From NCBI GenBank assembly GCA_038087875.1, contig CM075977.1, positions 266,724,001 to 266,788,000 of the forward strand: a DNA stretch of 64,000 bases, in the 5' to 3' direction. Below, in pieces: positions 2,059 through 60,389 of this stretch (its first letter is position 1; every line of letters begins with the position of its first letter). Under the pieces are notes generated by a model. That model ran no database searches. It had not been told where the DNA came from and saw nothing but the letters and a program-made list of their open reading frames with translations. A program made the position numbers and the translations under genes. The DNA comes from Malacoraja senta. Taxonomy: Eukaryota.

Positions 2059-2919
2059 TTATATTACAGTACTTAAAATTGTTTCTGCAAACGTTCCAGG
2101 TTTAATTACTGGTTTATGATAAAATAGTTGGAAAGTTTTCTCCCTTGACCATCCTGCTGTCTTGAGGATTTGGTCCATCGGAACATCCAACTGCATAGCT
2201 GCCGATGTAGCTGCAGCCCTGGTGGAATGAGATTTGAAAATGTTAGTATCCACCCCAGCCTTTATTAGAACCTGTTTCAGCCATCTTGAGATGGTCTGGA
2301 TCGTCACTTTTTTGTGAGGTTGCTTGTGGCTGATTAATAGTGCCATCTCTTTGCCTCTGATGATTTTCGTATACTCCATATATAGCAGTAAATGTCTTAC
2401 TATACAAAGACGATCATCTGTCGGGTAAGCCCTAAATTCTATATTGAGGCCTGCTGACCCCTGTCTGTTCTGCTTGACTAATTCATAAATATGACACGTT
2501 ATATTCCCAGATGAAGAAGTCATGTTGTCCAGTCTTAATTTATGTAATGACTGTACCCTTTGTGCCGTGACCAATGCCATCAGCATGACTGTTTTCAGTG
2601 TCAGTCTTTGTAGGGACAGAGCTGTTGCTGGAGACCAATTCCTTAGCATAGTCAGGACAATACTCACATCCCATATTTGGGAGTACCTGGTTCTTGGGGG
2701 ATTGATATTAAAAATTCCCCTCATAAGTTTTGTTACCAGGGGGTGAGTCCCAACAGAATGACGCTCTGTTCCTTGGCTTAGATATGTTGACAGGGCACTT
2801 CTGGCGCAGTTGATGGCACCATAACTGAGCCGCTCATCATAATGGAGGCCTGCCAGGAATTCCAGAACAGACAGGATGTTCATTGATCTGTAGGTGATGT
2901 TGTTTCTGTGACAGTACAT
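2059..2919 (-). CDS. DIRS tyrosine recombinase (N-terminus cut by a premature stop)
   Basis: LVTAQR, HSTR, AGWS..TF..FY catalytic motifs. Confidence 0.88.
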   Translation of the reverse strand: MYCHRNNITYRSMNILSVLEFLAGLHYDERLSYGAINCARSALSTYLSQGTERHSVGTHPLVTKLMRGIFNINPPRTRYSQIWDVSIVLTMLRNWSPATALSLQRLTLKTVMLMALVTAQRVQSLHKLRLDNMTSSSGNITCHIYELVKQNRQGSAGLNIEFRAYPTDDRLCIVRHLLLYMEYTKIIRGKEMALLISHKQPHKKVTIQTISRWLKQVLIKAGVDTNIFKSHSTRAAATSAAMQLDVPMDQILKTAGWSREKTFQLFYHKPVIKPGTFAETILSTVI

Positions 2920-3029
2920 CTACCATTTCCTGATATATACCAGGTACTGTTTTTTGGTGGACTGTCTGTGGGCCGCTGAAATAATGTTCACTGTTCGGTC
3001 CGTCAGTCCCAGTTGCAGTAGATGTACTT

Positions 3030-4769
3030 TTAGACTCTACAAATTAATAAGTTCATATGGTTATGACATGGGTGGCTTTCCCTTGTTACGGGATGAACCA
3101 GTAAATCTGGTATATTCAGGATGGTGATGCATGGTTCTAATACCATGTCGAGTATCACAGGGAACCATGGTTGAGTAGGCCAATCGGGTACTACCAAAAT
3201 ACCAGACGCAGAGTCTTGCTGTATTTTCCTTAATACCCGACTGATGAGGCAGAAAGGAGGGAATGCATAAATAAACAATTTCCCCCAATGCAGCGAAAAT
3301 GCATCTGTCGCCGCTGCCCCAGGGTCTGGTTCCCATGAAACATAGTTTGATAACTGGTGATTAAGCCTGGATGCGAATAGATCGATATCTGGTGTTCCAT
3401 ACCGTGCTGTAATATCAGCAAATACTTTTTTATCCAACATCCATTCGGTGTTTTCATTAAATTTGCGTGACCTGGTGTCTGCCACTGAATTTAGTTTACT
3501 TGGTAGGTAAGTAGCTGATATCCAAATATTTCTCTGGATACACCATTGCCAAATTGTGTTGGCCAGATTGTCACATGATGTCGATTTGTTTCCACCCATG
3601 TGGTTGATATATGCTACCACGGTGGTATTGTCAATCTGTAGTCTAACATGCTGGTGACATAACCCAGAACAATATGACTTTAGGCCATGGAATGCACCCA
3701 ACATTTCCAGGTAGTTTATGCCCAGTGTTTGTAATAATGACGCCTCCTGTGCATTCCATCTACCTCCACAGCTGAAGATGGAATTGGTAGCACCCCAACC
3801 AAGTGCACTGGCATCCGTTTGTAGCACCATAGAAGGGTTGCTGATAATGATTGGATTGGAACAATGCCGAATGTTATCTTTCCACCATTTTTGTTCCATT
3901 ATGGCTTCGATTGGTAGCTTCATTGGTCTGTCAAAATGACCAGCATTAACTTTGAGTGCTCGTATTTTTGCCCTCTGTAAGTTTTGATAATGTAAAGGTC
4001 CGAATTGTGTGGCTGGAAAGGCAGCCACTATTTTGCCAATTATTCTTGCTACCAATCTGATGGATGGTTTACTGATGTCAATAAGGTTATTGCAAGCCTC
4101 TATTAAGGCTATAGCCTTTCCCTTAGGCAAAGTCACCGACATGTGAACTGAGTTAATGGTGAACCCCAAATAATCCATTGTGGTGGAAGGGTTTAATTTA
4201 GATTTAACTGGATGGATGATAAACCCCAGTTTTTCAAATAATTGTTTCGTGGCTGTTACTGTTTGTTTGGCCAATTCCAAAGTTTTGCCCACAATAAGTA
4301 TGTCATCTAGTTATGCCATCGCCATATGTTTTTGTTTCCGCAGAAACGCTAGGGCTGGTTTCAAAATTTTTGTGAACAGCCTGGGGGCTGATGTTAGCCC
4401 ATTTGGTAGTGCTCTGTACTGCCAGAGCTGTCCCATCCAGTTGAATTTTAAATAACATCTGTGGTCACCTCGTATAGGCACTGAATAGTAAGCATCTTTT
4501 AAATCGATGCTTGCCATGAAGTAACCTTTGGAAATCAATTGTTTAGCAGTAACAAAGGTTTCCATTTTGAAATGAATATATTGTACAAAAGTATTCAAAT
4601 TTGTCAAATCTATGATGATGTGACAACCACTATCTTTTTTGTTTTTGGTAAAGATATTGGAAACAAATTCCAGCGATTCGTGTTGGGTTTTTTCAATTAC
4701 CCCTTTTGCGTAAAGCCGCTCCAGTTCAGCATGTGCTTCTGATGTTTCTTTACCTGAAAGTACGAACAT
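3030..4769 (-). pseudogene. DIRS pol: RT + RNase H + adenine-methyltransferase-like domain
   Basis: IDLKDAYY, LPNGL.SAPR.FTK, YLDD with Y mutated to a stop near 4311, TDAS..GWG, IN.LE, DN.TVVAYIN..GG, DLFAS...YAFPPF. Confidence 0.9.
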
Positions 4770-5134
4770 TCGGTTTGGTACATGCTGGAGGGCTATGTTT
4801 GTGTATAAATTCTATGGTATATCCCTGGATACTGCTTAAAATATAAGTGTCTGTAGTTAACATACTCCATGCATCCAGAAAGAAGTGTCATCTCCCACCA
4901 ACCTCCATACTCCCTGCAATTCATAAGGAACCAGACCCACCTGCCTCCATGGTTACCAGTGGCAGGTTTACTTCTTTTTGTGAATCCTTCGTGGGGGTTG
5001 AGGCGCCGGTGTCTGGGTTTGTGGTTGGGTTGGTGTTGGGGGTTTGCGCATCTTCCACGAAGGCCGGTCTGGGCCATGGCCTAAAAAACCCCGATGTTCG
5101 GTGTACCTGGTCTTTGAGCTTTCACCAGTTTGTC

Positions 5135-13783: not shown

Positions 13784-13918
13784 TTCTTCTTCTTGGGTAT
13801 GGCGTGCACAGCCTAAAGTTGCAGGTCAACTTGTTCTATTTGATCTTGTTTGTGCAAGCGGGTTGATTGCATTAGTCGAACCAGGGTGGACCACGTGACG
13901 GTTGCAATCTCCCACTCC
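13784..13918 (-). mobile_element. Ribozyme-headed short retroposon, copy C
   Basis: Perfect 12-bp TSD AGTCTCGTCACC (13772-13783, 13919-13930); (AAG)n tail; homologous to the copies at 53243 and 53490. Confidence 0.9.
13866..13918 (-). ncRNA. Minimal HDV-like ribozyme (mutated copy)
   Basis: P1 GGAGUGG/CCACCCU, P2 AUUGCA/UGCAAU, P3 ACC/GGU, L3 GUCACGU, C-UAA. Confidence 0.7.
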
Positions 13919-15089
13919 AGTCTCGTCACCAATTGAGCAACGCTGGTCCTTTTCCTGCTTTGTTTTGCGGAATAAATGGCGTTGAAATCTAGCATTTGGC
14001 ACCACCACATAATGACTGTTCTTATAGTCTTCCTTCATTCCGGTGTCAGGGAGCGTTCTAAACGTTTCTTGAACTGCTGGCCCCGCGGTGAAGAGAAGAA
14101 ACGCTCTCCGCTGAGCTTTCTGCCCCGGCGTACTCTCATCAAGAAAGAGCCCACGACTGTCGGCGTAGGCCTCGAATTCCTCCAGCCAAGTGTTCCACTT
14201 CACGCTGACGGTACTCGCATCACCCGTCGGATCGAAGTGTGGAACTCCGCGAAGTGCTAAGAAATCAGCTCCAGCGACTGCTATTATGAAACCTTTTTGG
14301 AGCTCGTAGCCAGGGATTCAGATTCCAAAATATCCTCGTCGCCAATGTCACATCTTCGCCTAAGATGTGGAATAATAATACGGTCACAAGATTTACGGGT
14401 TTCATTCCTTTGTCCGTGTGATTATTGTCTCCGCCGATCATGTCCTCCCGCCTTGGCTTACACAGCGCACATGCGATCTGACTTCCAATGCAGCCGATAC
14501 AAAGGTCAAGATATTTGCATATCATGATCATGACTCATAGTCTCATACCAGACTCATTGTCATGACTGGCAGAGCAGAGGGACATCGGGTTATGGGCCTG
14601 CAGGCTTCCTGGATTGGGGGGCTCCAGGACTTCCAACGTGGACTAGACTTTGTTAGTGTTTTCTGTTTTATTTAAAATACATTTAAAAAAATCATAAACT
14701 GCGCCATAATTGTGGCAATTGTGCATTTGTGGTTGTGCAAAATAATGTCACTGTGCTGTGCACACATGACAGTAAAGAACCATTGAACACCCCTTTAATG
14801 TGAATAATATTTTTTATATATAGAAAAATTCACAAGCGTCCCAAGACTGTTGCAACTGAAGGTTACATTTTTTTAAATGCAAAAAAACCCAGTATTTTTG
14901 AAATCACAAAACAAAAACACTTTATTTAGGAAAAACATTGTGAATGCACATTGGCAAATATTAGTCCAAGTGAATTTAAGTGCAGGGTGGAGGTTAGTGA
15001 TAAAGTTAATGAAGTCACGGGTGCAGAAGTCAGCCCCGATGCAGTCATTGATGTCGTGGAGAAAAAGTTGGGGAATGGAGCCAGTGCAT

Positions 15090-15310: not shown

Positions 15311-15730
15311 TACATAAAGGGCCTGTCCCACTGCGGGGACCTAATTGCCGAGTTTAGAAGAGTTTGCCCTCGACTCATACTCGCAGCATGGTCAACACGA
15401 GGTCCTAGTAGGTCTTTGTAACTCTCCTTCATGCTCGAGAGCAGTCCCCGTGTAATCGAGGCCTCAGCTAGGCCGCGGCGTTTTTTTCGACATGCTGAAA
15501 AATGCCCGCGAGTAATAAAAGGTTGCCATGGAAAAAATCGATATTTAACATTTTGGACAAAAGATTTAGAAGATACCCAATGCCCTGGATGGATAGAATC
15601 AAGTACACAGGACAAGATGTTAAGAAGTCCCTTGTGCCAATACGTGGGGAGCATTTCACGACATTCGTTGATTGTTGAGAGTGGTAGACGCTCAATATCG
15701 GGGGGGTAACCTTCAGGACAGTTGGGCACA

Positions 15731-15795
15731 GGACACATCATCAGCAGTGTACCCTTGCATCACTGGGTGTTTCGGCCTTTTAACACTATACACCC
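15731..15795 (-). ncRNA. Putative hammerhead-like core in HERO 3' UTR (second copy at 19680-19744)
   Basis: GGGUGUA-UAGUGU..GGCC-GAAACACCC...ACACUG-CUGAUGA-UGUGUC; helices I and III in register, helix II weak. Confidence 0.4.
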
Positions 15796-15865
15796 TCCAC
15801 AAGGGCGGCCCGCTGCAGGATGATCAACCCTCAGCGCGTGACCCGTGTCAAACCGTCCCAAAGAT

Positions 15866-18800
15866 TCACCCCGACATACTTGGGGCCCAGCATGGGTCTT
15901 TCCGCTTGAGCCAAATCCACCGGCTGCTTCTTTCAGCCGCCTCTGAGAGTGATCTTATGGTCTTCCGCAGAGCCTGACCGTGGATTCCAAGCTCCTTCAG
16001 CAGTCTGATGGTAGATGACGCAACAAATCCTCTGCATCCCACTTCAACTGGATAGACTTTGGTGTTCCAGCCACGCTGCGTTGCCTCTGCTGCAAGCTCT
16101 GCGTAGCGCAGCTTCTTACGCTCATAGGCCTCCTCAACAGAGTTCTCCCATGGAACTGTGAGCTCTATGATGTAAGCAGTCTTCTGTGAAGGGGACCAGA
16201 ACACCAAGTCTGGCCTGAGATTGGTGGAAGCCATTTCAGGTGGAAAAATTAGTTGTCGGCCGATGTCCGCCAGCATCCTCCAGTCATGGGCCCTGCATAG
16301 GTTTCCTTCTTCTGATCTGGTGGAAGGAAGTTTAGATGTTTTCTGTCCTTCTCGGACAAAGGTTGTTACCCTTGGGGGGGGGGGGGGGTTGCTTGCTCTC
16401 GGAGGCAAGGAGTTGGTCGCACACCGCCTGTTCTCAAGGGCTGATGCCAGGCTTTTTAGTACCTGATTATGCCGCCACGTGTATCTCCCTTGCGTGAGGC
16501 TGGTCTTGCAGCCTACCATGATGTGTTTGAGGGTCGCTGGAGTTGGGCAGATGGCACAGGTTGGATCCTCGCCGTACCACTGATGGAGGTTCTTTGGTGA
16601 TGGAAGCACGTCATATGTCGCTCTGATGATGAAGCTGATCTTGCTTGCTTCCATTTCCCATAGTTCTTTCCAGTTGATCTTCCTCCGCTCCACACCTTCC
16701 CACTGCATCCATTGCCCCTGTTTGGCAAGAGAGACCGCCTTGCACTTCTTGCGGCCTCCTCCTGTCGCCGCACCTCCTCAACCACCAACGTCCTCCGCTC
16801 TGATGTTGTGGCCTTTCGCCAAGTTGGTTTACTTGTCATAAGGCCAAAGCCTCCTCTTCCCTGCTGGACTTGCCCCACTATGTCTTTGTGCCTCAGGGCT
16901 GATGAAGCTTGCTGTACTGCATCAGATGGTGTCCACTTCCGGCCAGTTGCTAGGGGTGGCGCAACAGCACTGATGGTCTTGTCTCTAGAGTCTCTCAGTG
17001 TCATCTGGAGTCTTACTTTAGAACACTTATATTCCTCTGTTAGACTAGTGAGAGGTAGTTCCAGGACCCCTTTGCCATAGAGGCCGATGTTAGTTAGACA
17101 TCGTGGGACACCGAGCCATTTCTTCACGTATGAAGTTATGGTTCGCTCCATCTTCTCCACAGTTGTTATTGGGGCTTCATAAACGGTCAGTGGCCACATT
17201 GTCCGAGGAAGGAGTCCAAACTGTAGGCACCAGAGCTTCAGTTTCCCAGGCAGTAGGGTCTGATTGATGTTCTCCAGGCCGTTGACAATTTCTTGCCTTA
17301 GTTGTTGCACCTGCTCTTTGTCCTTGAGACTTGCGTTGTACCATCTGCCCAGGCTTTTAACTGGCTGCTCAGACACTGTTGGTATTGGGTCGTCACCGAT
17401 ACAGAACCTTGTGTCTCTAAGCACCCCCTTGACTATGGAGATGCTTCAAGATTTACTTGGTTTGATTTTCATTCGGGCCCACTCGATGTTCTCCTGCAGC
17501 TTTCCAAGTAGCCACTTGGTGCATGCTGCAGTAGTGGTTAGTGTTGTCATGTCGTCCATGTATGCCCTCATCGGTGGCAGACGGAGCCCAGCCCTGGTTC
17601 GTTCACCGCCCACCACCCATTTTGAGGCCCTGATGATGACTTCCATGGCCATTGTAAAGGCCAAGGGTGAGACTGTGCAGCCTGCCATGATGCCTACTTC
17701 CAAGCGCTGCCATGTTGTACTGAAGTCAGCTGTTGTGAAGCACAGCTGCAGGTCTTGGTAATATTTCTTGACCAGTGTGGTGATGAGCTCTGGTACATGG
17801 AAAAAGGCAAAAGATTCCCAAAGGAGTTCATGGGGAACTGAACCAAATGCATTGGCCAGATCGAGGAAGATCACATGTAGGTCGCTCTTGTCCTTCTTAG
17901 CTGCTTGGATCTGGTGCCAGATCATGCTTGTATGCTCCAAGCAGCCCGAAAATCCTGGAATTCCTGCTTTCTGTACAGATGTATCAATGTACTTGTTTGT
18001 TACCAGATAGGTGGACAGCCTTTGTGATACAATGCTGAAAAAGATTTTTCCCTCGACGTTGAGGAGACATATTGGCCGGAATTGGCTGATGTCTGACGCA
18101 TCCTTTTCTTTAGGTATTAGCACGCCGCCTGCCCTTCGCCACGCCTTAGGTATTGTTTGCTTCTTCCACACCACCCTCATGAGCTTCCATAGAAAGCGTA
18201 ACACATCCGGTGCGTTCTTGTAGAGTTTGTATGGTACTCCGTTTGGCCCCGGAGCTGATGCTGCTCTTGCTCGCCGGACCGTGTTCTCCACCTCTTTCCA
18301 TCTCAGAGGGCTGGTGTCCAGGTTGAATTCAGGTGGTTGAATAGGCGGGATGTCATGTGGGATGACTAACTGCTCATGCCTTTTCGTGTCTTTGTGGGCC
18401 TTTTCCAGGTGTTCCTCCAATTCCTGTTTTGATGTTTTCAAAGTTCCACTTTTTTCCTTTGCGAAGAGGTCTTTGATGAACTTGAAAGGGTCTTTGTAGA
18501 ACCGTGTTCATGAGTGTTCTTTCTTCTTGCAAAGTTCCCTCAAGTTCTCTGCTTTTCGCAAGGTTGCCAATCGGTTCTTGATGTCCCCTTGGAGTAGCAT
18601 GAGACCTTCTCTCTCTGCGTCAGTTGCTTTTTTCCATTGCCTTTTCAACTGTCTCCTCTCTCTGATTAGCCTCTCGATCTCCTGCTGCCTCCTGGACTTG
18701 ATTGGTGTTGGTAATTTCTTTCCACCTCTCCCTTTACTCACCCCAAACCGTTCTTCTCCATAGCTGTAGATTGTGTTGACAATCCTTTCAAGCTTTTCCA

Positions 18801-19340
18801 CTGCTGTGCCCGCTTGTTGCTCCAAGATATGTATAAGGTCACTGTTGACCGTCTCCCACTCTTTCTTTTCAACAGCTTTGGGCCATTTCACTCCAGGTTT
18901 GTGCCCTTTGATCTTTCCCTCCAATGGAGGTCTTTGTAGTTGTTGCGTGGGCTCCTCCACCGGCATTTCTGTGCTTGTATCACCCTCTTCAGTGACATGG
19001 GTGCTGATGCTCTGCGAACTTTGGTTTGTGTCCCGTCGCTGTGCTTCACTCGACTGATTTGACTGGTTGCTTCATAAGAAGTACTGGTCAATGCGAGGCC
19101 CATGTTTCTGCTCTCTCAAGCACTTTTTCTTCCCTTGGTGGATCTTCAAGCCCTTCACTGATGTTATTTTCTCCCAACCACAGATGCACACCTGAAGTTT
19201 GTGTCCCGCAGCTGTTGTGGATGTCTCATGTGCCATGCTCTCCTTGTCAGTAGTCGTTTCCGTTCCTGGGTCTGTAACCGTGTTATCAATCGGTGAGCCA
19301 TCTTGCGCCACCGCTCTCGCAGGCTCTATGGGGTATTCTC
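15866..19340 (-). pseudogene. HERO ORF (Zn finger - RT - CCHC - restriction-like endonuclease)
   Basis: CICGWEK...IHQGKKKC; LDLANAFGSV, GIMAGC..SP, AYMDD; CAIC...HIMVGC, RHN, RPD..IIELTVPWE..K..RY. Confidence 0.92.
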
Positions 19341-19543
19341 TTTAGTTTACTTTTAGTAGCATTTAGCGGGTGTCTCCAACTAGCTGAAACAGCGTTGGGG
19401 ACTGCTGTCATGGGTAGCTAGCCCATGACGGCCCCAGTGGGGTCTGTTCCCTCCTGTCAGCTGTCTCTCCAAGCTGTCACATGGACTTTCCCATGTTGTC
19501 TGCTGTCCTTTCACAGCAGTCACTGGACGAGTCCAGATTATCA

Positions 19544-20880
19544 GAATCAAGTACACAGGACAAGATGTTAAGAAGTCCCTTGTGCCAATAGGTGGGGAGC
19601 ATTTCACGACATTCGTTGATTGTTGAGAGTGGTAGACGCTCAACATCGGGGGGGGGAACCTTCAGGACAGTTGGGCACAGGACACATCATCAGTAGTGTA
19701 CCCTTGCATCACTGGGTGTTTCGGCCTTTTAACACTATACACCCTGGGAGAGGTTGTGTCTTTAAACTATGGTACTAACATCTTTTCTGTTCTCCATCTC
19801 ATCATTGTTTGAAATTCAGTCTGGTTTGGTGGTGTCGTCTTAACATTGGTAAATGGGGTTAGAGCAGAATTCAGCCATACAGTCATGAGTGTAGAGTGAG
19901 TATAGCATTGTTCTGCGAGCACATCCTTGTGGTGAACCATTGTTGAGAATGACTATGGCGAATGCTGAGTCGCCTATTCTTACTGATTGCAGTCTATGGA
20001 TCAAGATGTTAAGGATTCTGTTGCAGTGAGGGCTGTGGAGTCCTAGGTCCAGGAGTTTGATGTTGAATTTGGTTAGAATCATGTACCAGAAATTTCTGCT
20101 TGTAAGCAGGGATTAGGAGCACAACCATGTGGTCAGATTTTCCAAAATGCAAGGGCGGCCCGCTGCAGGATGATCAACCCTCAGCGCGTGTCCCGTGTCA
20201 AACCGTCCCAAAGATTCACCCCGACATACTTGGGGCCCAGCATGGGTCTTTCCGCTTGAGCCAAATCCACCGGCTGCTTCTTTCAGCCGCCTCTGAGAGT
20301 GATCTTATGGTCTTCCGCAGAGCCTGACCGTGGATTCCAAGCTCCTTCAGCAGTCTGATGGTAGATGACGTAACAAATCCTCTGTATCCCACTTCAACTG
20401 GATAGACTTTGGTGTTCCAGCCACGCTGCGTTGCCTCTGCTGCAAACTCTGCGTAGCGCAGCTTCTTACGCTCATAGGCCTCCTCAACAGAGTTCTCCCA
20501 TGGAACTGTGAGCTCTATGATGTAAGCAGTCTTCTGTGAAGGGGACCAGAACACCAAGTCTGGCCTGAGGTTGGTGGAAGCAATTTCAGGTGGAAAAATT
20601 AGTTGTCGGCCGATGTCCGCCAGCATCCTCCAGTCACGGGCCCTGCATAGGTTTCCTTCTTCTGATCTGGTGGAAGGAAGTTTAGATGTTTTCTGTCCTT
20701 CTCGGACAAAGGTTGTTACCCTTAGGGGGGGTGGGGGGTTGCTTGCTCTCGGAGGCAAGGAGTTGGTCGCACACCGCCTGTTCTCAAGGGCTGATGCCAG
20801 GCTTTTTAGTACCTGATTATGCCGCCACGTGTCTCTCCCTTGCGTGAGGCTGGTCTTGCAGCCTACCATGATGTGTTTGA
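19544..20880 (-). mobile_element. Second, 5'-truncated HERO copy in tandem, split by a 404-bp foreign segment (19746-20149)
   Basis: 19544-19745 matches 15596-15796; 20150-20880 matches 15800-16530. Confidence 0.9.
19840..20082 (-). mobile_element. Rex1/L2-like RT fragment
   Basis: QSVRIG...LN.GSPQGC....LYSLYTHDC. Confidence 0.7.
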
Positions 20881-21424
20881 AACATGCTGAAAAATGCCCG
20901 CGAGTAATAAAAGGTTGCCATGGAAAAAATCGATATTTAACATTTTGGACAAAAGATTTAGAAGATACCCAATGCCCTGGATGGATAAACCTAGAACGTG
21001 ATTCCTTACAAGAGCTATCATTGGCTTCTATTCTAGAGGTAGGTCGTAGTAGGTCGTAATGCTATCGTAGGTAATCAAAGGCAATCGAAGGTAATCGAAG
21101 GTAGTCGAAGGTAAAGCTCGTTGAGAAAAAAAAGGTAAGTAAACCGACCGGTAATGTTAAATGCCCGCTAAACTTTATTAAAGGTTGTCTGGCTTCTTAA
21201 AAGTGTCTCCACTCCTTCTCCCCCCCCTTCTCCGCCCAATTCTCCCCTTCTCTCCTCTTCTCTCCCCTTCTCTCCCCTTCTTTCCCCTTCTCTCCCCCTC
21301 TCTCCCCTTCTCTCCCTCCCCCCCCCCTCTCCGCGCTCTCTAAAGGACTTACCGTAACTGTGCCAGCGGTCTTTTACTTTTCTGTTCATTTGTGTGAATT
21401 TCAGACAGCGCTCCCCCGCTTTCC

Positions 21425-35989: not shown

Positions 35990-36290
35990 ACCAGTGTTCG
36001 ATCCTGATTACAGATCCTGACTACAAGTTTGTACGTTCTCCCCGTGACCGCATGGGTTTCCCCGGGTGCTCCGGTTTTCTCCCATACTCCAAAGACATAC
36101 AGATTTGTAGGTTAATTCACTTTGGTAAAGATTGTAAATTGTCCCTAGTGTGTAGGATAGTGTGTAGGATAGTACTAGTAGGATAGTGTGTAGGATACTG
36201 TGTAGGGTAGATAGTATGGGGATCGCTGGTTGGTGCAGACTCATTGGGCCAAAGGTCCTGTTTCTGCGCTGTGTCTCTAAACACTAATCT
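35990..36290 (+). mobile_element. V-SINE (HE1-like)
   Basis: GTTCGATCCTGA, V-domain, tail. Confidence 0.8.
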
Positions 36291-44269: not shown

Positions 44270-44910
44270 CACAATGGCACAGCTGGTAGAGCTGTTGCTT
44301 CACAGCTCCAGCGACCCAGGTTCGATCTTGACCTTGGCTGCTGTCAGCGAGTAGTTTGTACATTTGGCACATTGGGCGACACAGTTCCGCAGCGGTTTAG
44401 CTGCTGCCGTACAGCACCAGAGACCCAGCTTTCATCCTGACTGCAGGTGCTCTCTGCACGGAGTTTGTACTTTCTCCCTGTTACCGCATGGGTTTTCTCC
44501 GGGCGCTGAGGTTTCCTCCCACATTCCAGAGACGTGCAGGTTTGTAAGTTAATTGGCTTCTTTAAAATGTCCCCAGTGTGTAGAATAGACCAGTGTGTGG
44601 GTGATCATTGGTCAGTGCGGAACCGATGGGCCAAACGGCCTGTTTCCATACTGTATCTCTGAACTAAACTAAACTAAAACTCTCCCTGTGAACATGTGGG
44701 GGGTTTTCTGGCCACTCCAGTTTCCTCCCACTTCCCAAAGACGTGCGGATTTGTAGGTTCATTGGCCTCTGTAAATTGCTCCTAAAGTGTAGGGGGAGGA
44801 TGAGAAAATAGGGTAGCATCGACTTAGGGTGCATGGGCTTTCAATGGGTCGGCATGGGCTTGGTGAGCCAAAGGGCCTGTTGCCATGTCTATCTTTAAGC
44901 ATAAACTATA
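44270..44910 (+). mobile_element. Nested V-SINE within V-SINE
   Basis: Head at 44270 interrupted by a full SINE 44365-44680; V-domain resumes at 44680. Confidence 0.75.
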
Positions 44911-50165: not shown

Positions 50166-51414
50166 TGACAGTGGCTAACTCTTGCCATTGGTCTGTACCT
50201 CCTGCTATATGTCTAAAAAAAATTACAATGGGAACTTGTACACTTCCCTAATCCCCCAGTAGCACAGGGCGCAGCTGGTAGAGCTGCTGTCTCAGCACCG
50301 GAGACCCAGGTTTAATCCTGATATCAGGTGCTTTCTGTGTGGAGTTTGCATGTTCTTTCCATGATCGTGTGTGTTTTCTCTGGGTGCTCCAGTTTTCTCT
50401 CACATCCCAAAAAACCTGTGGGTTTGTAGATTAATTGGCCTCTGTATATTGAAAAAAATCGTTCTAATGTTCAGGAATGTATGAGATAGTGGGATAACAG
50501 TGTGTTGCTGTGTGTTGGTGTTTCCATGTGCGATGTCGAAAATAAACAGTCTTCATTTTATTAGTTAGAAAGATTGTCAACTGTATGATCAACTTTCTGA
50601 AGGCTGGAACATGACAACTTCTGTACCTTTTATGATTTCTGTGCAGCAACTTCCTCAGTCATGTGGTATTCATGGATTCCACAGCGGTAATCCGCTTGAT
50701 TTCATCTATTAATTCAGCGACTAAAATTCAGACTGTTGTAGTTTCTGTATTACACCATGAAGAGACACCGTGTAGAAAATGTACTTTGGAATATATTCTC
50801 TTTCCATGTTTGAAACTCCTATTTTGTGGCATTTAAATATTGCTTTGTTGAAAAATGAATGACAGATTTTCATTCCATTTCAGAAATTGTCTTATGTTCC
50901 CAGAGTGCCTCTCTGCCTCTCTGCCTTTTTGTGTTTCTGAAATAAAACAAACTCGAACATTTTTAGGAAGACAAAAATGCTGGAGAAACGTTTCGGGTCG
51001 AGACCCTTCTTCAGACCATTTTAGAGTCATACAGACCTCTAAACGGGCCCATTGGCCCAACTTGCTCACACCAACCAACATGTCCCATCTACACTAGTCC
51101 CACCTGCCTTTGTTTGGCCCATATCCCTCTAAACCTATCCAATCCCTGTAACTGTCCAGATATTTCTCAAACGTTGCAATAGTACCCGCCTCAACTACCT
51201 CCTCCAGCTGCTCCATATACCCCCCACCCTTTGTATTTAAAAAAAGTTACCCCTTAGGTTCCTATTAAATCTCCCCCCCCCCCCTTCACGTTTAATGGTC
51301 ATCACTTTCAGTAATAATTAGGTAGGTACTAGGAGAAGATTGAAGTAGCCTAATGTCAGTGGGTGAGGTGGTGTAGTCCAGAAAAAGGGAGGCTAAAATT
51401 GTGTGGAAGCCATT

Positions 51415-52045
51415 AGAGTTCAAGTTCAAGTTCACATTTATTGCCACATGCACCAATTGAGGTACACTGGAATTTGACTTACCATGCAGCCATACAAAGC
51501 ACAATACACAATAGAATATAACATGAACATCCACCACAGTGGAATCAACTTCTTCACTGTGGTGGAAGGCAATAACTTTGTCAGTCCTCCTCCTTTGTTC
51601 ATCCGTGGTCGGGGCGATGAACCCTCCACAGTCGTCGCTACGGATGGCCCGATGTACAGGCCCTCTCGTCGGGATGCTCGAAATTCCGACGTCGGGACGG
51701 ATGGACACTCCACGGCTTGGACGTCCCGAATCGGCCGCTTCCTACTGGAGACCGGGGCTTCACGATGTTATAGGCCGCAGGCCGGCGGCCGGAGCTCTTA
51801 AAGTCCACACCGCACCCGTGGCTAGAAGCTCCGCAGACCGCGGCTTCAGTATGTTATAGGCCGCAGGCCGGCGGTCAGAGCACTTCTTCTGGTGACCCTC
51901 GGCAAGGGCTCGCCCTCTCCGTGATGGGAAGTCCACGCCGCGCCCGTGGCTAGAAGCTCCGCAGACCGCGGCTTCAGAATGCCGTAGTTCGCGGGCCAGC
52001 GATCCTCAGGATGTCGTATCTGCGGGCCAGCGATCGGAGACCCTG
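51415..52045 (-). mobile_element. Non-autonomous retroelement with (TTGAAC)n tail and GC-rich internal tandem repeat
   Basis: Microsatellite tail at 51415-51435; duplicated unit at 51766-51850 and 51852-51978. Confidence 0.5.
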
Positions 52046-53242
52046 TGAACCAATTGTGAACTTTCTGTAGGGTGGAATAGCAGGGATTCCCTTTCAACTC
52101 TATAGCGGAAATATGGAGTATTCACCCTGTCTTGGACACCCTTTGCTCACCTTCACAGCACCACTCCTCACCTCTCCTGGAGCTCTTTGGTGGGCTTTCC
52201 TTGTGCAGGAGACTATTTGTGCTGCTCCTGAATCCTGGTCTACCCACTCCCACCAGAATTACTACTACTGCCTGCCAGCCGCAAGTGATTCTTACTGAGA
52301 TTCGCTGAGAGCATGATCGTGAAACATAAAGGTGACAATCCTCACTGTGTACGCTTTTCACATATCCTAATACAGCCCACACCCTACACTAGTTCCAAGC
52401 ACTCTGCCTGACAGTTTAAAACCACGGCTACTGAGATATAATAAGCCTCATTTCAACTGTAGAGAGTGACTTACTGCATCAGGCAGCTTTTAAATTAGCA
52501 ATGTTCACTGAAGCTTAACGGTTTAAATCCCATAGTCATGATGGTGTATATTTTTAGAAACAGGAGAGGGTTAGTATCCGGTATCCCTATGGATGGACTC
52601 TTCAGGTGGGAGCCAGCATTAATTTTGCTGTCGATGGAGAACTGTATAATATCTTTAAAACATGGTGGTGTGTGAAATATTTGCAGCCTCCATTTCAGTG
52701 CTCTGCATGATACCTGGGTTTTACTGTGGAATGGATCTAAATACTTTTACTGTCTAGCCACTGCTCTCCAATGCAATTGCAAAACGAATTTCAATGATAG
52801 GTATAAATGACATTGATTTTTATCAGGAAGTGCAGTTAATCTGGTTATACCTCGTGTGCTGAGAAGATAAGCATCTTATGTCTGTTCATTTATTTTTCTT
52901 ATTACTTTTCTCTCTGCTTGCTATGCTATTTTAAATTTAGCAGGAGATTTGGATGCTCTGTTTATGCTGTATTTTACTTTTGATTACTTTTTTAAATTTC
53001 AGTCAATCCTCTTTTCTATTTTTGATTTCAATCAGTCCCAGGTAATGTGGTTGTTTCCAGGCTGAAGGGATATCGTAATATTGCAGCTGATGGAGCTGCT
53101 GCTTCACAGCACCAGAGAATGGGCTTCAATCTTGCCCTCGGGTGCTGTCTGCACTTTCTCCCTGTGACCGTGTGGTTTTTCTCTGCGGTGCTCCAGTTTC
53201 CTCCCACATCCCAAAGACGTGTGGCTCTGTCAGTTAATTGGC

Positions 53243-53295
53243 GGGGTGGGAGATTGCAACCTTCACGTGGTCCACCCTGTTTCGACTAATGCAAT
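53243..53295 (+). ncRNA. Minimal HDV/CPEB3-like self-cleaving ribozyme
   Basis: P1 GGGGUGG/CCACCCU (G1-U wobble), P2 AUUGCA/UGCAAU, P3 ACC/GGU, L3 UUCACGU, catalytic C at 53286. Confidence 0.85.
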
Positions 53296-53379
53296 CAACT
53301 CGACGTGCACAAACAAATTGATCCAATAGAACAAGTTGACCTACAACTTTAGACTGTGCACGCCATACGCAAGAAGAAG
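53243..53379 (+). mobile_element. Ribozyme-headed short retroposon, copy A
   Basis: TSD TAATTGGC (53235-53242, 53383-53390); (AAG)3 tail. Confidence 0.9.
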
Positions 53380-53489
53380 TTATAATTGGCCTCTGTGAAA
53401 TTGTCCCTCGTGCATAAGGAATGGATCTGTAAGTGGAATAACATAGAAATAGTGTGAATGGATATTCGATGGGCTACAGTGAAGGAGCT

Positions 53490-53542
53490 GGGGTGGGAGA
53501 TTGCAACCTTCACGTGGTCCGCCCTGTTTCGACGAATGCAAT
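53490..53542 (+). ncRNA. Minimal HDV/CPEB3-like self-cleaving ribozyme
   Basis: P1 GGGGUGG/CCGCCCU, L3 UUCACGU, J4/2 CGAA (C at 53533), P2 AUUGCA/UGCAAU. Confidence 0.85.
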
Positions 53543-53623
53543 CAACCTGGCGTGCACAATCAAATAAGATCAAATAGGACAAGTTGTCCTACAACTTTAG
53601 GCATACGCAAGAAGAAGAAGAGG
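53490..53623 (+). mobile_element. Ribozyme-headed short retroposon, copy B
   Basis: TSD AGGAGCT (53483-53489, 53624-53630); (AAG)n tail. Confidence 0.9.
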
Positions 53624-53809
53624 AGGAGCTGCGTCTAATACAGAGATGGCATCTGCAGATTTCACAATTCTCAGGCTGGGAAGCCGGCCCATTCGACATG
53701 CTCTAACCCAATGGTGCAAACAGTGAATTCCCTCCTTCCTTTTCCCCCTCCTCTCTTCCCCGTGCCCCAACAAGGTACGCACCCATTGCACCCAGCACCA
53801 AACTGAGGC

Positions 53810-58184: not shown

Positions 58185-58574
58185 CTAGGCCAACTGGACA
58201 CCGAACGTGCATTTGCGGGGGGGGGGGGGGGGGGAGGCTGTGGCATCACACTAATCACCCCCTTTCCTCCAAAGCACGGAATCCGGCACCCACAAACACA
58301 CACACTCATCACACCCCTTGATATTATCTTAATATTTTAATTTGCTTCTTTTATCCCATCTCCACCCTATCCACTGCCGAATAGCCCTCACCTCTCAGAT
58401 GCGTCTAGAGGTGTTGGGGCAGAGGGAAAATTTAATGTTAGAAAAGAAAAATTTGAAGAGGAGGAGGGTGGAGAGGAGAGGGGTGGAGAGAGGAAAGAGA
58501 GGATGGGGAGAGAGGTGAAGGGGGGGGTTGGAGCGGGCGTGCATGAGTCAAGCCGCGGGCTGTGAAGAGAGAAG

Positions 58575-58610
<36 letters not shown>

Positions 58611-60389
58611 AGAGACAGAGAGACTGGTACACAAAAAAAAGCTGGAAAAACACAGCGGGTGCAGCAGCATCTATAGAGCGAAGGAAATAGGCAACGCTTT
58701 GGGTTGCAGCCCATCCTCAGACTGGTTTTCTACCGAAACGTTGCATATTTTTTTCGATCCATAGATGCTGCTGAACCCGCTGATGATATACAGGTTTTTT
58801 TTGTGTACCTTTGATTTTCCAGCATCTGCAGTTCCGTCTTAAAGACAGAGAGACTGTTGGCGGGCTGTTTTCCCAACGCGCATTTGCGGGAGGGGGCGGT
58901 GGGGATGCGGCATCACACTCACACTAACCACCCCCCAAACTCCCACTAACCACCCCCAAACACACTCGGGGAGAGGGGGGGAGGATGGAGAGGAAGACGG
59001 GGTGGGGAGAGAAGAGAGGAGAGGGAGATGGGGTGGGGAGAGAAGAGGAGAGGGGGAGGGAGGGGAGAGGGGGAAGAGAAAAGGGGAGAGATTGGGGAGG
59101 GAGAGGAGATCAGGGTGGGTGAGAGGGAGGGGGAGGAGAGTGGGGAGTGGGAGGAGAGCGGGGAGGGCAGGAAGGGGGAAGAGGGTGGGAGGGGATGAGG
59201 GGAAGGGTAGAGGAGTAGGGGGAAGAGAGGGAGAGAGGGAGGTTGGAGGGAGAGAGGTGGGGAGGGAGAGGGGTAGAGTGGGGAGAGAGGGGTAGCGGGG
59301 AGTGGTGCAAGAGAGAGGGGAAGGGGGTGGGGGGGAGATGGGGGTGAAGAGGGGTGGTGGAGGGGGAAGAGAGGGGTTTGGAGGGGAGGGAGGGGGAGGG
59401 GAGAGAGGGGGAAGAGTGGGGAGGGAGAGTTGAAGTAGGAGGGGTAGGGGTAGGGACAGTCCATCTGTTCCCCATTCCCTATCACCCCCAATCCTCTTTC
59501 TCTATTGCCACACATGTGACGACGCCCTTCGACACAGGCTGTGGGGTTGGGGGGGAGGGGCTGGGGCTGCTGCCAAGGCATATGTAAATGAATCCATTCC
59601 GATTGGACATCTGTTAGCATCGGGCATTGTGACATCACACAATGGAATCTTTACTAACATTCTATGGCTGAGCTGTTTTTTTAATCATTTTTAAATGTTT
59701 GGGGGTGGGGGGGGGAGACATTTTGAAATTTCCCCATTCCCTATCACCCCCACACACGTGGCGACGCCCTTCGACACAGGCTGCGGGGTTGGGGCGGAGG
59801 GGCATGGGGTGTGGCTGCTGCAAAGGCATATGTAAACGGATTCATTTCGATTTGTCACACGTGTCGCAGGGCGTCGCCACGTGTGTGGGGGTGATAGGGA
59901 ATGGGGAAATTTCAAAATGTTAAACAAACAGCTCTCAGCAAAAGAATGTAAATGAAGGTTCCGTTTTGTGATGTCACAATGCCCAATGCTACGGGGGTTG
60001 GGGGGAGGGGCCGGGGCTGGGGCTGCTGCAAAGGCATATGTAAATGGGTCCATTCCGATAGGACATCTGTGACCATTGTGTATTGTGACATCACACAACG
60101 GAATCTTTACTAACATTCTATGGCTGAGCTGTTTTTTTTAAACATTTTGAAATGTTTGGTTTGGGGGGGGAGAGGTATTTTATTTTAAAAAGTGTACATA
60201 AACATGACCAAATTTAATCAGGATTGTCTATTCGTAAATATAAACGTAATCTCTTCAGAAACGGTAAAAAATATCGGCGTTTCCGCGCGCCGCGTGGGCG
60301 TAGGGCGGTATCAAAGGGCTGCGTGGCACAAGTCAAGCAGAACGTTGGCCGTACAGACGGATGACAGCCACAGAGTTTTATATAATAGA
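58185..60389 (-). mobile_element. Non-autonomous Helitron-like element (second family), joined to the 5' end of another unit at 58101-58184
   Basis: 5' A|TCTATTATATAAAACTC at 60389; 3' CTAG at 58185-58188; internal polypurine tract and duplicated modules. Confidence 0.7.
58960..59460 (+). repeat. G/A-rich low-complexity tract
   Basis: Near-pure purine strand with many G runs. Confidence 0.9.

Follow-up and report, generated by a model that had tools for sequence, protein, structure and literature searches.

In R2, RTE, Ingi/L1Tc and LOA elements, and likewise in non-autonomous elements derived from them, the 5′ end is formed by a ribozyme resembling that of hepatitis delta virus (HDV) (PMC5786205, PMC3414825, PMC4035085, PMC3185411, PMC7761336). 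Among the clades of long interspersed elements (LINEs), R1, R2, R4, RTE, Ingi as well as LOA are given as ribozyme-bearing, and Vingi is not among them (PMC5786205). Bipartite non-autonomous LINEs have been recognised in R2, RTE, Ingi and Vingi (Kojima 2018, PMC5786205); in the bipartite Vingi and RTE LINEs, a LINE 5′ end and a LINE 3′ end are joined by internal deletion (PMC5786205; Kojima 2015, PMC4494074). We analyzed a stretch of 64,000 nucleotides (nt) of Malacoraja senta DNA (contig CM075977.1, positions 266,724,001 to 266,788,000), referred to below as the window, and characterized a retroposon of about 135 nt that is present there in three copies. The first 54 nt of this element are predicted to fold as a minimal HDV-like ribozyme, and the element is probably a genuine ribozyme-headed, bipartite non-autonomous derivative of a LINE.

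The NARTc, RIME and SIDER elements (PMC3185411, PMC3383444, PMC4035085) are, like the element, short, dispersed and without an open reading frame (ORF). They carry the HDV-like ribozyme of a LINE 5′ end as their first bases, end with a LINE 3′ end and are mobilised in trans. They differ in their trypanosomatid hosts, in their poly(A) tails and in a 77-nt, P4-containing head that doubles as an RNA polymerase II (Pol II) promoter (Pr77), whereas the element has an (AAG)n tail and a 54-nt head that lacks the P4 helix and is not known to act as a promoter. The R2 SIDEs (PMC3414825) consist of a ribozyme 5′ end and the 3′ untranslated region (UTR) of the parent, have no ORF, and have their 5′ end self-cleaved from a co-transcript. 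However, they are specific to a site in 28S ribosomal DNA (rDNA) and depend on a LINE with a restriction-like endonuclease, whereas the element is dispersed, is flanked by target-site duplications (TSDs) of variable length, and has ribozyme relatives that head LINEs with an endonuclease of the apurinic/apyrimidinic (APE) type. The principle of an internally deleted, ORF-less derivative that keeps the 5′ ribozyme of a LINE is already known from the R2 SIDEs (PMC3414825) and from NARTc, RIME and SIDER (PMC4035085). The element differs from these in its size (135 nt, of which 54 nt form the head), in lacking P4, in its CPEB3-type core, and in its host and genomic dispersal.

Other comparisons concern the head alone. 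The mammalian CPEB3 ribozyme (RF00622) has the same L3 loop (UUCACGU), the same CCCUGU after it, the same G1·U pair at the base of P1 and, as in copy 2 of the element, the J4/2 sequence CGAA. It differs in being single-copy, conserved and intronic and in having a 7-bp P4; the element has no P4 and has other P1, P2 and P3 sequences. The identity in L3 and J4/2 may be due to constraint on function and not to common ancestry. A similar ACC-UCUaCGU-GGu is found in the consensus of the bacterial HDV-F-prausnitzii ribozyme. The drz-Mtgn and theta ribozymes are, like the head, P4-less and about 50–60 nt long, and they are active in vitro (PMC10879173); a passage of that report, citing Riccitelli 2014, describes P4-less HDV-like ribozymes as active in vitro. 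About 99% of its minimal ribozymes are in Caudoviricetes gut phages, often 3′ of tRNA genes, and no minimal P4-less ribozyme was reported in the eukaryotic genomes searched there. The element differs from the theta ribozymes in that its ribozyme-like segment forms the 5′ end of a retroposon in a eukaryote, and ARAGORN detected no tRNA in it or nearby. A literature search, with Repbase and Dfam outside its scope, found no such family described in fishes and no Vingi ribozyme. The string GUUCACGU and loose shark terms returned nothing informative.

Copies, boundaries and 3′ module

Positions in the element were numbered from G1, the first base of the predicted ribozyme. Copy 1 lies at 53243–53379 (+), with the head at 53243–53296 and the 3′ module at 53297–53379. 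Copy 2 lies at 53490–53623 (+), with the ribozyme at 53490–53543 and a tail of (AAG)4 followed by AGG. Copy 3, which is decayed, lies at 13918–13784 (−) and has an (AAG)4 tail. A 24-mer of the head matched at exactly these three places in the window with three or fewer mismatches, and a 22-mer of the tail hairpin did likewise; the chance expectation was 0 for both. A covariance model built from the family scored 66.3 bits for copy 1, 62.8 for copy 2 and 56.5 for copy 3, and a search of the window with it found no further copies. Pairwise identity among the three copies was 91–96% in the head and 82–92% in the remainder.

Each copy is flanked by its own direct repeat. The TSD of copy 1 is TAATTGGC, at 53235–53242 and 53383–53390 (+), the 3′ TSD being preceded by TTA. 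That of copy 2 is AGGAGCT, at 53483–53489 and 53624–53630 (+), and that of copy 3 is GGTGACGAGACT, at 13930–13919 and about 13783–13772 (−). The length of the TSD varies from 7 to 12 bp among the copies, and the tails are (AAG)3–4. Copy 1 is inserted in a short interspersed element (SINE) at 53160–53450 (+), which is separate from the ribozyme element and provided the empty site. This host SINE family has the core GGTGCTCCAGTTTCCTCCCACA...CAAAGACGTG...GTAGGTTAATTGGC and is represented by at least five copies in the window (36038–36200, 44475–44640, 44684–44850, 50357–50520 and 53160–53450). Its uninterrupted copies (at 44475, 44684, 50357 and 36038; repeat families D15, D17 and D20) read ...GTTAATTGGC(C/T)TCTGTAAATTG... 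Because these intact copies give the true empty site, the 5′ end of the copy 1 insert is G53243. G1 of the predicted ribozyme is the first base of the element in all three copies.

The combination of variable-length direct repeats and a microsatellite tail is a hallmark of LINEs that have an APE-type endonuclease and insert by target-primed reverse transcription; it does not point to a DNA transposon. The element of about 135 nt is a retroposon, flanked by TSDs and tailed by a microsatellite, whose 5′ end is exactly G1. Reading frames in the copies span 10–19 codons only and differ from copy to copy. An earlier note on this DNA had claimed three copies, each with its own TSD, of a retroposon without an ORF; the 24-mer and 22-mer matches, the TSDs, the tails, the empty site and the shortness of the frames confirm it. 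Copies 1 and 2 are independent insertions in the same orientation, 110 nt apart, in or adjoining one host SINE copy. Their closeness may be due to chance or to a local target preference.

The 3′ module of copy 1 contains an outer 8-bp stem (53304–11/53355–62), an inner 6-bp hairpin (53333–38/53344–49) and an (AAG)3 tail (53371–79). The inner hairpin, 53333–49, reads AAGUUG-ACCUA-CAACUU. The outer stem and the hairpin together form the minimum-free-energy fold of −14.4 kcal/mol (z −2.38), and one of 200 shuffled sequences gave an equally good fold. The hairpin stems are invariant among the three copies, the two substitutions in the hairpin both falling in its loop; in copy 2, a 10-nt deletion removes the 3′ strand of the outer stem. 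The stem, the AAGUUG/CAACUU hairpin and the (AAG)n tail described in the earlier note were all recovered, the tail in each of the three copies. A stem-loop beside a microsatellite tail is recognised by LINE reverse transcriptases of the 'stringent' type, and the 3′ module is presumed to be where the LINE reverse transcriptase binds and primes. A short frame read from the copies, ...QIDPIEQVDLQL-stop, may represent the last codons of the ORF of the parent.

Predicted fold of the head and its relatives

In copy 1, the 54 nt of the head (53243–53296) are arranged in the order P1, P2, P3, L3, P3′, P1′, GU, linker, J4/2 and P2′. P1 pairs GGGGUGG (53243–49; positions 1–7) with CCACCCU (53272–78; positions 30–36) and has a G1·U36 wobble at its base, between G53243 and U53278. 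J1/2 is GA (53250–51). P2 is predicted to consist of 7 bp, GAUUGCA/UGCAAUC (53252–58/53290–96; positions 10–16/48–54), and P3 of ACC/GGU (53259–61/53269–71), closed by the L3 loop UUCACGU (53262–68; positions 20–26). P1 is followed by GU (53279–80; positions 37–38), the candidate bases of P1.1, and P4 is replaced by a 5-nt linker, UUCGA (53281–85). J4/2 is CUAA (53286–89), in which C53286 (position 44) is the candidate catalytic C. The nested P1 and P3 are part of the minimum-free-energy fold of the whole element. The HDV-type nested double pseudoknot had been put forward in the earlier note with the same P1, P3, L3, GU, UUCGA and C(G/U)AA and the same G1·U wobble. These parts hold, and P2 is extended from the 6 bp given there to 7 bp.

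The other two copies differ in few positions of the head. Copy 2 has an A-to-G change in the 3′ strand of P1 that retains a U·G pair, and its J4/2 is CGAA, with C53533 as the candidate catalytic C. In copy 3, a G3-to-A change disrupts one pair of P1, the first base of L3 is changed from U to G, the GU after P1 is changed to GG, and J4/2 is CUAA. P1.1 could be formed as a G-C pair with a U·U mismatch, using L3 positions 2–3, or as GU/AC, using positions 4–5. Its letters are the same as in the CPEB3 consensus, so that any pairing possible in CPEB3 is possible in the element too; they are invariant, and hence carry no covariation signal.

A segment of 71 nt around copy 1 was searched against the 4227 families of Rfam. 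Copy 1 matched CPEB3_ribozyme (RF00622) with 15.7 bits (E 0.031) and HDV-F-prausnitzii (RF02682) with 17.5 bits (E 0.12), and copy 2 matched the same models with 13.1 bits (E 0.23) and 14.4 bits (E 0.6), respectively. These two were the only families with E < 1 for copies 1 and 2, which bears out an HDV-type head, and by E-value CPEB3_ribozyme ranked first for either copy. In both alignments of copy 1, P1 begins at 53243, and P3 and L3 take their predicted places. The L3 of copy 1 and the CCCUGU that follows it correspond letter for letter to the CPEB3 consensus, and CGAAU of copy 2 is aligned onto the J4/2 of CPEB3. The models are blind to P2 and expect P4, which the head does not have. Judging from its sequence, the head would work in the manner of HDV-like ribozymes, yet it falls outside the membership of RF00622 and RF02682.

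A loose descriptor of the HDV topology found copies 1 and 2 and two other places in the window. Shuffled windows gave 1.5 hits per window, or 0.2 when a P2 of at least 7 bp was required, and 3–4 hits per window were obtained even when the catalytic C of the descriptor was replaced by A, G or T. Because shuffled windows and decoy bases give similar hits, the loose descriptor alone is not significant. The fold is supported by covariance-model matches, by covariation and by its position, and not by the descriptor. Three further hits of the descriptor type in the window were rejected: that at 16345 (+) as low-complexity sequence, that at 51967 (−) as part of a local tandem duplication, and that at 5027 (+) as a mimic of the HDV fold. 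The mimic (5027–5093, +) combines P1 and P2 helices of 7 bp each with the L3 sequence UCCACGA, a GG following P1, a GCCAUGGC hairpin and CUAA. It lies just past a DIRS-like element, on the opposite strand, and we treated it as a chance likeness, since its P2 and P3 are separated by 5 nt and Rfam gave no HDV-type match.

Relatives of the head were sought in sequence collections. The exact 21-mer ATTGCAACCTTCACGTGGTCC gave no matches in metagenome, viral and prokaryotic genome contigs. A 19-base core with one N, CCTTCACGTGGTCCNCCCTG, was found at 29 metagenome loci. This pattern prescribed P3 and L3, the P1 3′ strand and the next G; the P1 5′ strand and the two strands of P2 were left free and hence test the fold independently. 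At 19 of the 29 loci (11 distinct sequences), the fold was completed in the strands outside the pattern. The remaining loci were rejected, as they had no complementary P1 5′ strand or P2: seven (L004, L009, L011, L012, L015, L021 and L026) belong to one GC-rich bacterial gene, and L008, L017 and L024 are singletons. Those of the rejected loci that were searched with the family covariance model scored 13–16 bits or nothing, against 56–93 for true copies.

The loci that complete the fold form two groups. Group A comprises 17 loci with nine distinct sequences, on eukaryotic contigs from Joint Genome Institute (JGI) and European Nucleotide Archive (ENA) metagenomes, and its members are predicted full-P4 ribozymes (for example, L006:988–1062(−), L025:2908–2982(−), L016:574–648(−), L002:13382–13456(−) and L005:1949–2023(+)). 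Their P1 is GGGGAGG/CCUCCCU, in which pair 5–32 is reversed to A-U instead of U-A, and their P2 is UGACAGGU/ACCUGUCA or GACAGAU/AUCUGUC. They have a real P4 hairpin, GACAUU...AAUGUC or GCGGC...GCGC, and a J4/2 of C(C/U)AA immediately 5′ of the 3′ strand of P2. The L006 sequence matched the CPEB3_ribozyme model with 27.3 bits (E 7.5e-6) and no other ribozyme family. In L002 (13457–13495, −) and L019 (947–985, +), the first 39 nt, from P1 to P1.1, are tandemly duplicated directly upstream of the complete ribozyme.

Group B consists of L023:598–651(+) and L013:855–908(−), two AT-rich eukaryotic contigs with a predicted P4-less ribozyme like that of the window copies. They share GGGGUGG..., a UUUCGA linker and CUAA with the window type, and their P2 is GAUGACA/UGUCAUC versus GAUUGCA/UGCAAUC in the window, a difference of two compensated double changes. 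Between L013 and L023, conservation extends over about 280 nt upstream of G1 as well, placing the ribozyme inside a longer repeat and not at its edge. L023 has a second copy (245–304) of part of the region 3′ of the ribozyme.

Covariation was evaluated in an alignment of 14 sequences (A3), in which P2 was encoded as a pseudoknot. Paired cells amounted to 90.5%, compared with 39–46% when the partners were slid and a mean of 78.4% in shuffled alignments. The covariation score was 0.416, compared with at most 0.08 for slid partners and a mean of 0.184 for shuffles, none of 500 shuffles reaching it. P2 was paired in 92% of cells and showed double-sided changes at five of eight pairs, with four different helix sequences. 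Pair 5–32 of P1 was A-U in seven sequences, U-A in four, G·U in one and U·G in one, and pair 17–29 of P3 was A-U in five and G·U in nine. The pair of G1 at the base of P1 was G·U in 10 of the 14 sequences and A-U in three. The candidate catalytic C occupied the first position of J4/2 in 13 of the 14; the exception, L016, has U. Four P2 sequences, each complementary over 7–8 bp at the same place, are unlike chance in our reading of the alignment. The pairing expected of a conserved fold is thus kept across relatives, including double changes in both P1 and P2.

Origin of the element and competing explanations

Group A also connects this type of ribozyme with LINEs. In this group, the similarity between loci detected by BLAST starts at G1 of the ribozyme, within 4 nt, and decayed ORFs lie downstream of the ribozyme. 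A 138-aa fragment had 171 homologues at E ≤ 0.001, many of them with PF14529, an endonuclease domain of non-LTR (long terminal repeat) retrotransposons. For a 172-aa fragment, 96 of the 100 nearest Atlas clusters were RVT_1 clusters, with scores of 0.91–0.92, which is a lead rather than proof. Pfam recognised nothing in four ORF fragments of L022. The endonuclease was assigned through the PF14529-carrying homologues, and the reverse transcriptase through Atlas look-alikes only. On these assignments, the same ribozyme type heads LINEs with an APE-type endonuclease in group A, which accords with the 5′ ribozymes of R2, RTE, Ingi/L1Tc and LOA. The ribozyme lineage is CPEB3-like by the curated model too, and we understand the window family best as a form of it that has lost P4.

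The following course of events would account for the element. Having no promoter of its own, it would be transcribed within any Pol II transcript that runs through it. The head would fold into the nested double pseudoknot and cut immediately 5′ of G1, making the first base of the RNA the first base of the element. This cleavage site is proposed because of the fold, the covariation and the start at G1 in all three insertions. A LINE protein with APE and reverse-transcriptase activities would bind the 3′ stem-loop and tail, and priming on (AAG)n at the nicked target, with copying up to the RNA 5′ end, would yield full-length inserts with TSDs of 7–12 bp. The TSDs and the tail are observed, and the remaining steps of reverse transcription are those that we infer. 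The parent LINE would carry at its own 5′ end most likely the same ribozyme, or a version with P4, and the element would have arisen from it by internal deletion. It is likely, if somewhat less so than the derivation from a LINE, that the head can still cleave without P4. Nearly identical 31-mers of the element were present for at least four organisms in RNA-run contigs and for about ten in runs that are untyped or likely DNA. Taken as sequence matches, they indicate presence in transcripts and in related species and are silent on cleavage.

Several points weigh against a LINE derivative with a working ribozyme head. The head scores well below the gathering scores of Rfam (35 bits for CPEB3_ribozyme and 44 bits for HDV-F-prausnitzii), and a search of the whole window at gathering gave no match. 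P4 is shrunk to the 5-nt UUCGA, and P1.1 amounts to no more than one G-C pair with a questionable second one. The covariation is drawn from about four independent lineages, so the events are few, and within the alignment the search pattern itself dictated P3, L3 and the P1 3′ strand, which leaves only the P1 5′ strand and P2 as independent tests. An internal promoter starting at G1 would also fix the 5′ end, as promoter and ribozyme coincide in Pr77 of L1Tc. The 64-kb window contains no LINE with the head or tail of the element, and we infer that its two ends are LINE-derived.

Some of these points are taken up by the alternative that survives best, in which the fold is a relic of a LINE ribozyme whose P4-less version no longer cleaves. 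The 5′ end would then be set by an internal promoter that overlaps the head and starts at G1, or the fold would serve as a protective or protein-binding 5′ structure. The reduction of P4 to UUCGA and the weak P1.1 fit such a relic, and there are precedents in the 77-nt segment of L1Tc, which is both promoter and ribozyme (PMC3383444), and in work on R2 that regards the ribozyme fold as 5′ protection (PMC13708176). However, the P4-less form with a compensated P2 is also present in an unrelated eukaryotic sample, and because the same architecture recurs there, in L013 and L023, the minimal form appears to be maintained. In addition, the candidate catalytic C and the CPEB3-type letters of L3 and J4/2 are intact in the consensus, and cleavage in vitro by P4-less HDV-like ribozymes is described in the passage of PMC10879173 mentioned above. 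We therefore consider a relic unlikely.

It is very unlikely that the element is an ordinary SINE of RNA polymerase III (Pol III) with cryptic A and B boxes and an incidental ribozyme-like fold. By eye, TGGGAGATTGC at +5 matches six of the nine specified A-box positions and GTTTCGACTAA at +37 matches six of nine B-box positions, with a spacing of about 32 nt; in copy 3, the B-box-like letters are GGTTCGACT. These letters are missing from the P4-bearing relatives. In L013 and L023, an extra U shifts them and makes a TTTT stretch, and Pol III stops at T runs. No tRNA was predicted by ARAGORN, Rfam gave no tRNA, 5S, 7SL or snRNA match in the element at E ≤ 10, and the covariation tracks the ribozyme helices. 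The earlier statement that the element has no A or B boxes is accurate in that no Pol III head is recognisable, and has to be qualified by the weak box-like matches. The name SINE given to the element is loose; as Kojima 2018 (PMC5786205) uses the terms, the 'ribozyme-SINE' is a bipartite non-autonomous LINE.

That a short retroposon of ordinary kind resembles the HDV fold by chance, although suggested by the descriptor hits in shuffled windows and with decoy bases (1.5 and 3–4 per window) and by the Rfam scores under gathering, is hardly credible given that only HDV-like families among 4227 matched the two copies (E 0.03–0.6), that P1 and P2 covary in relatives, a P4-bearing one of which reached E 7.5e-6 with the CPEB3 model, and that in two independent element families the first base of the repeat is also that of the fold.

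Wider meaning and other elements of the window

Ribozyme-keeping non-autonomous derivatives have previously been those of insects, which are rDNA-specific, and of trypanosomes. A dispersed vertebrate family of 135 nt that has no Pol III head would demonstrate that an element of SINE size can make do with self-cleavage alone in place of a promoter. Minimal P4-less HDV-like ribozymes would also extend beyond phages, their occurrence in eukaryotes having been left open in PMC10879173. Any sense copy that lies in an intron and has kept its cleavage activity would sever the pre-mRNA of its host, and such copies may affect gene expression. Ribozyme heads and LINE UTR modules serve in RNA-templated gene-insertion systems (PMC13708176), which gives a head of 54 nt practical interest.

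The CPEB3-like core and the relatives with significant matches to the CPEB3 model make this lineage a testable candidate source of the mammalian CPEB3 ribozyme. It is possible, though we think it rather doubtful, that the LINE-borne ribozyme lineage, with its P4-bearing and P4-less forms, represents the kind of element from which the mammalian ribozyme was exapted. If so, the head would define a further class of SINE-like heads, acting post-transcriptionally by excision from the host transcript, and a minimal P4-less HDV-like ribozyme would here be employed at high copy number in a eukaryote for the first time.

The long ORFs of the window were considered as a parent LINE and rejected, as they belong to two other elements. 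One is the DIRS-like retroelement, at 2059–4769 (−), with ORFs that match, respectively, RVT_1, RVT_3 along with a weak match to Dam methyltransferase, and Phage_integrase (tyrosine recombinase). The other is a reverse transcriptase-bearing element at 15490–20987, with an RVT_1 ORF at 17446–18441 (−); it is bracketed by a 300-nt direct repeat (15800–16099 and 20150–20449) that is 99% identical. Purine-rich low-complexity repeats of the GGAGAGG type occupy about 1 kb at 58440–59422.

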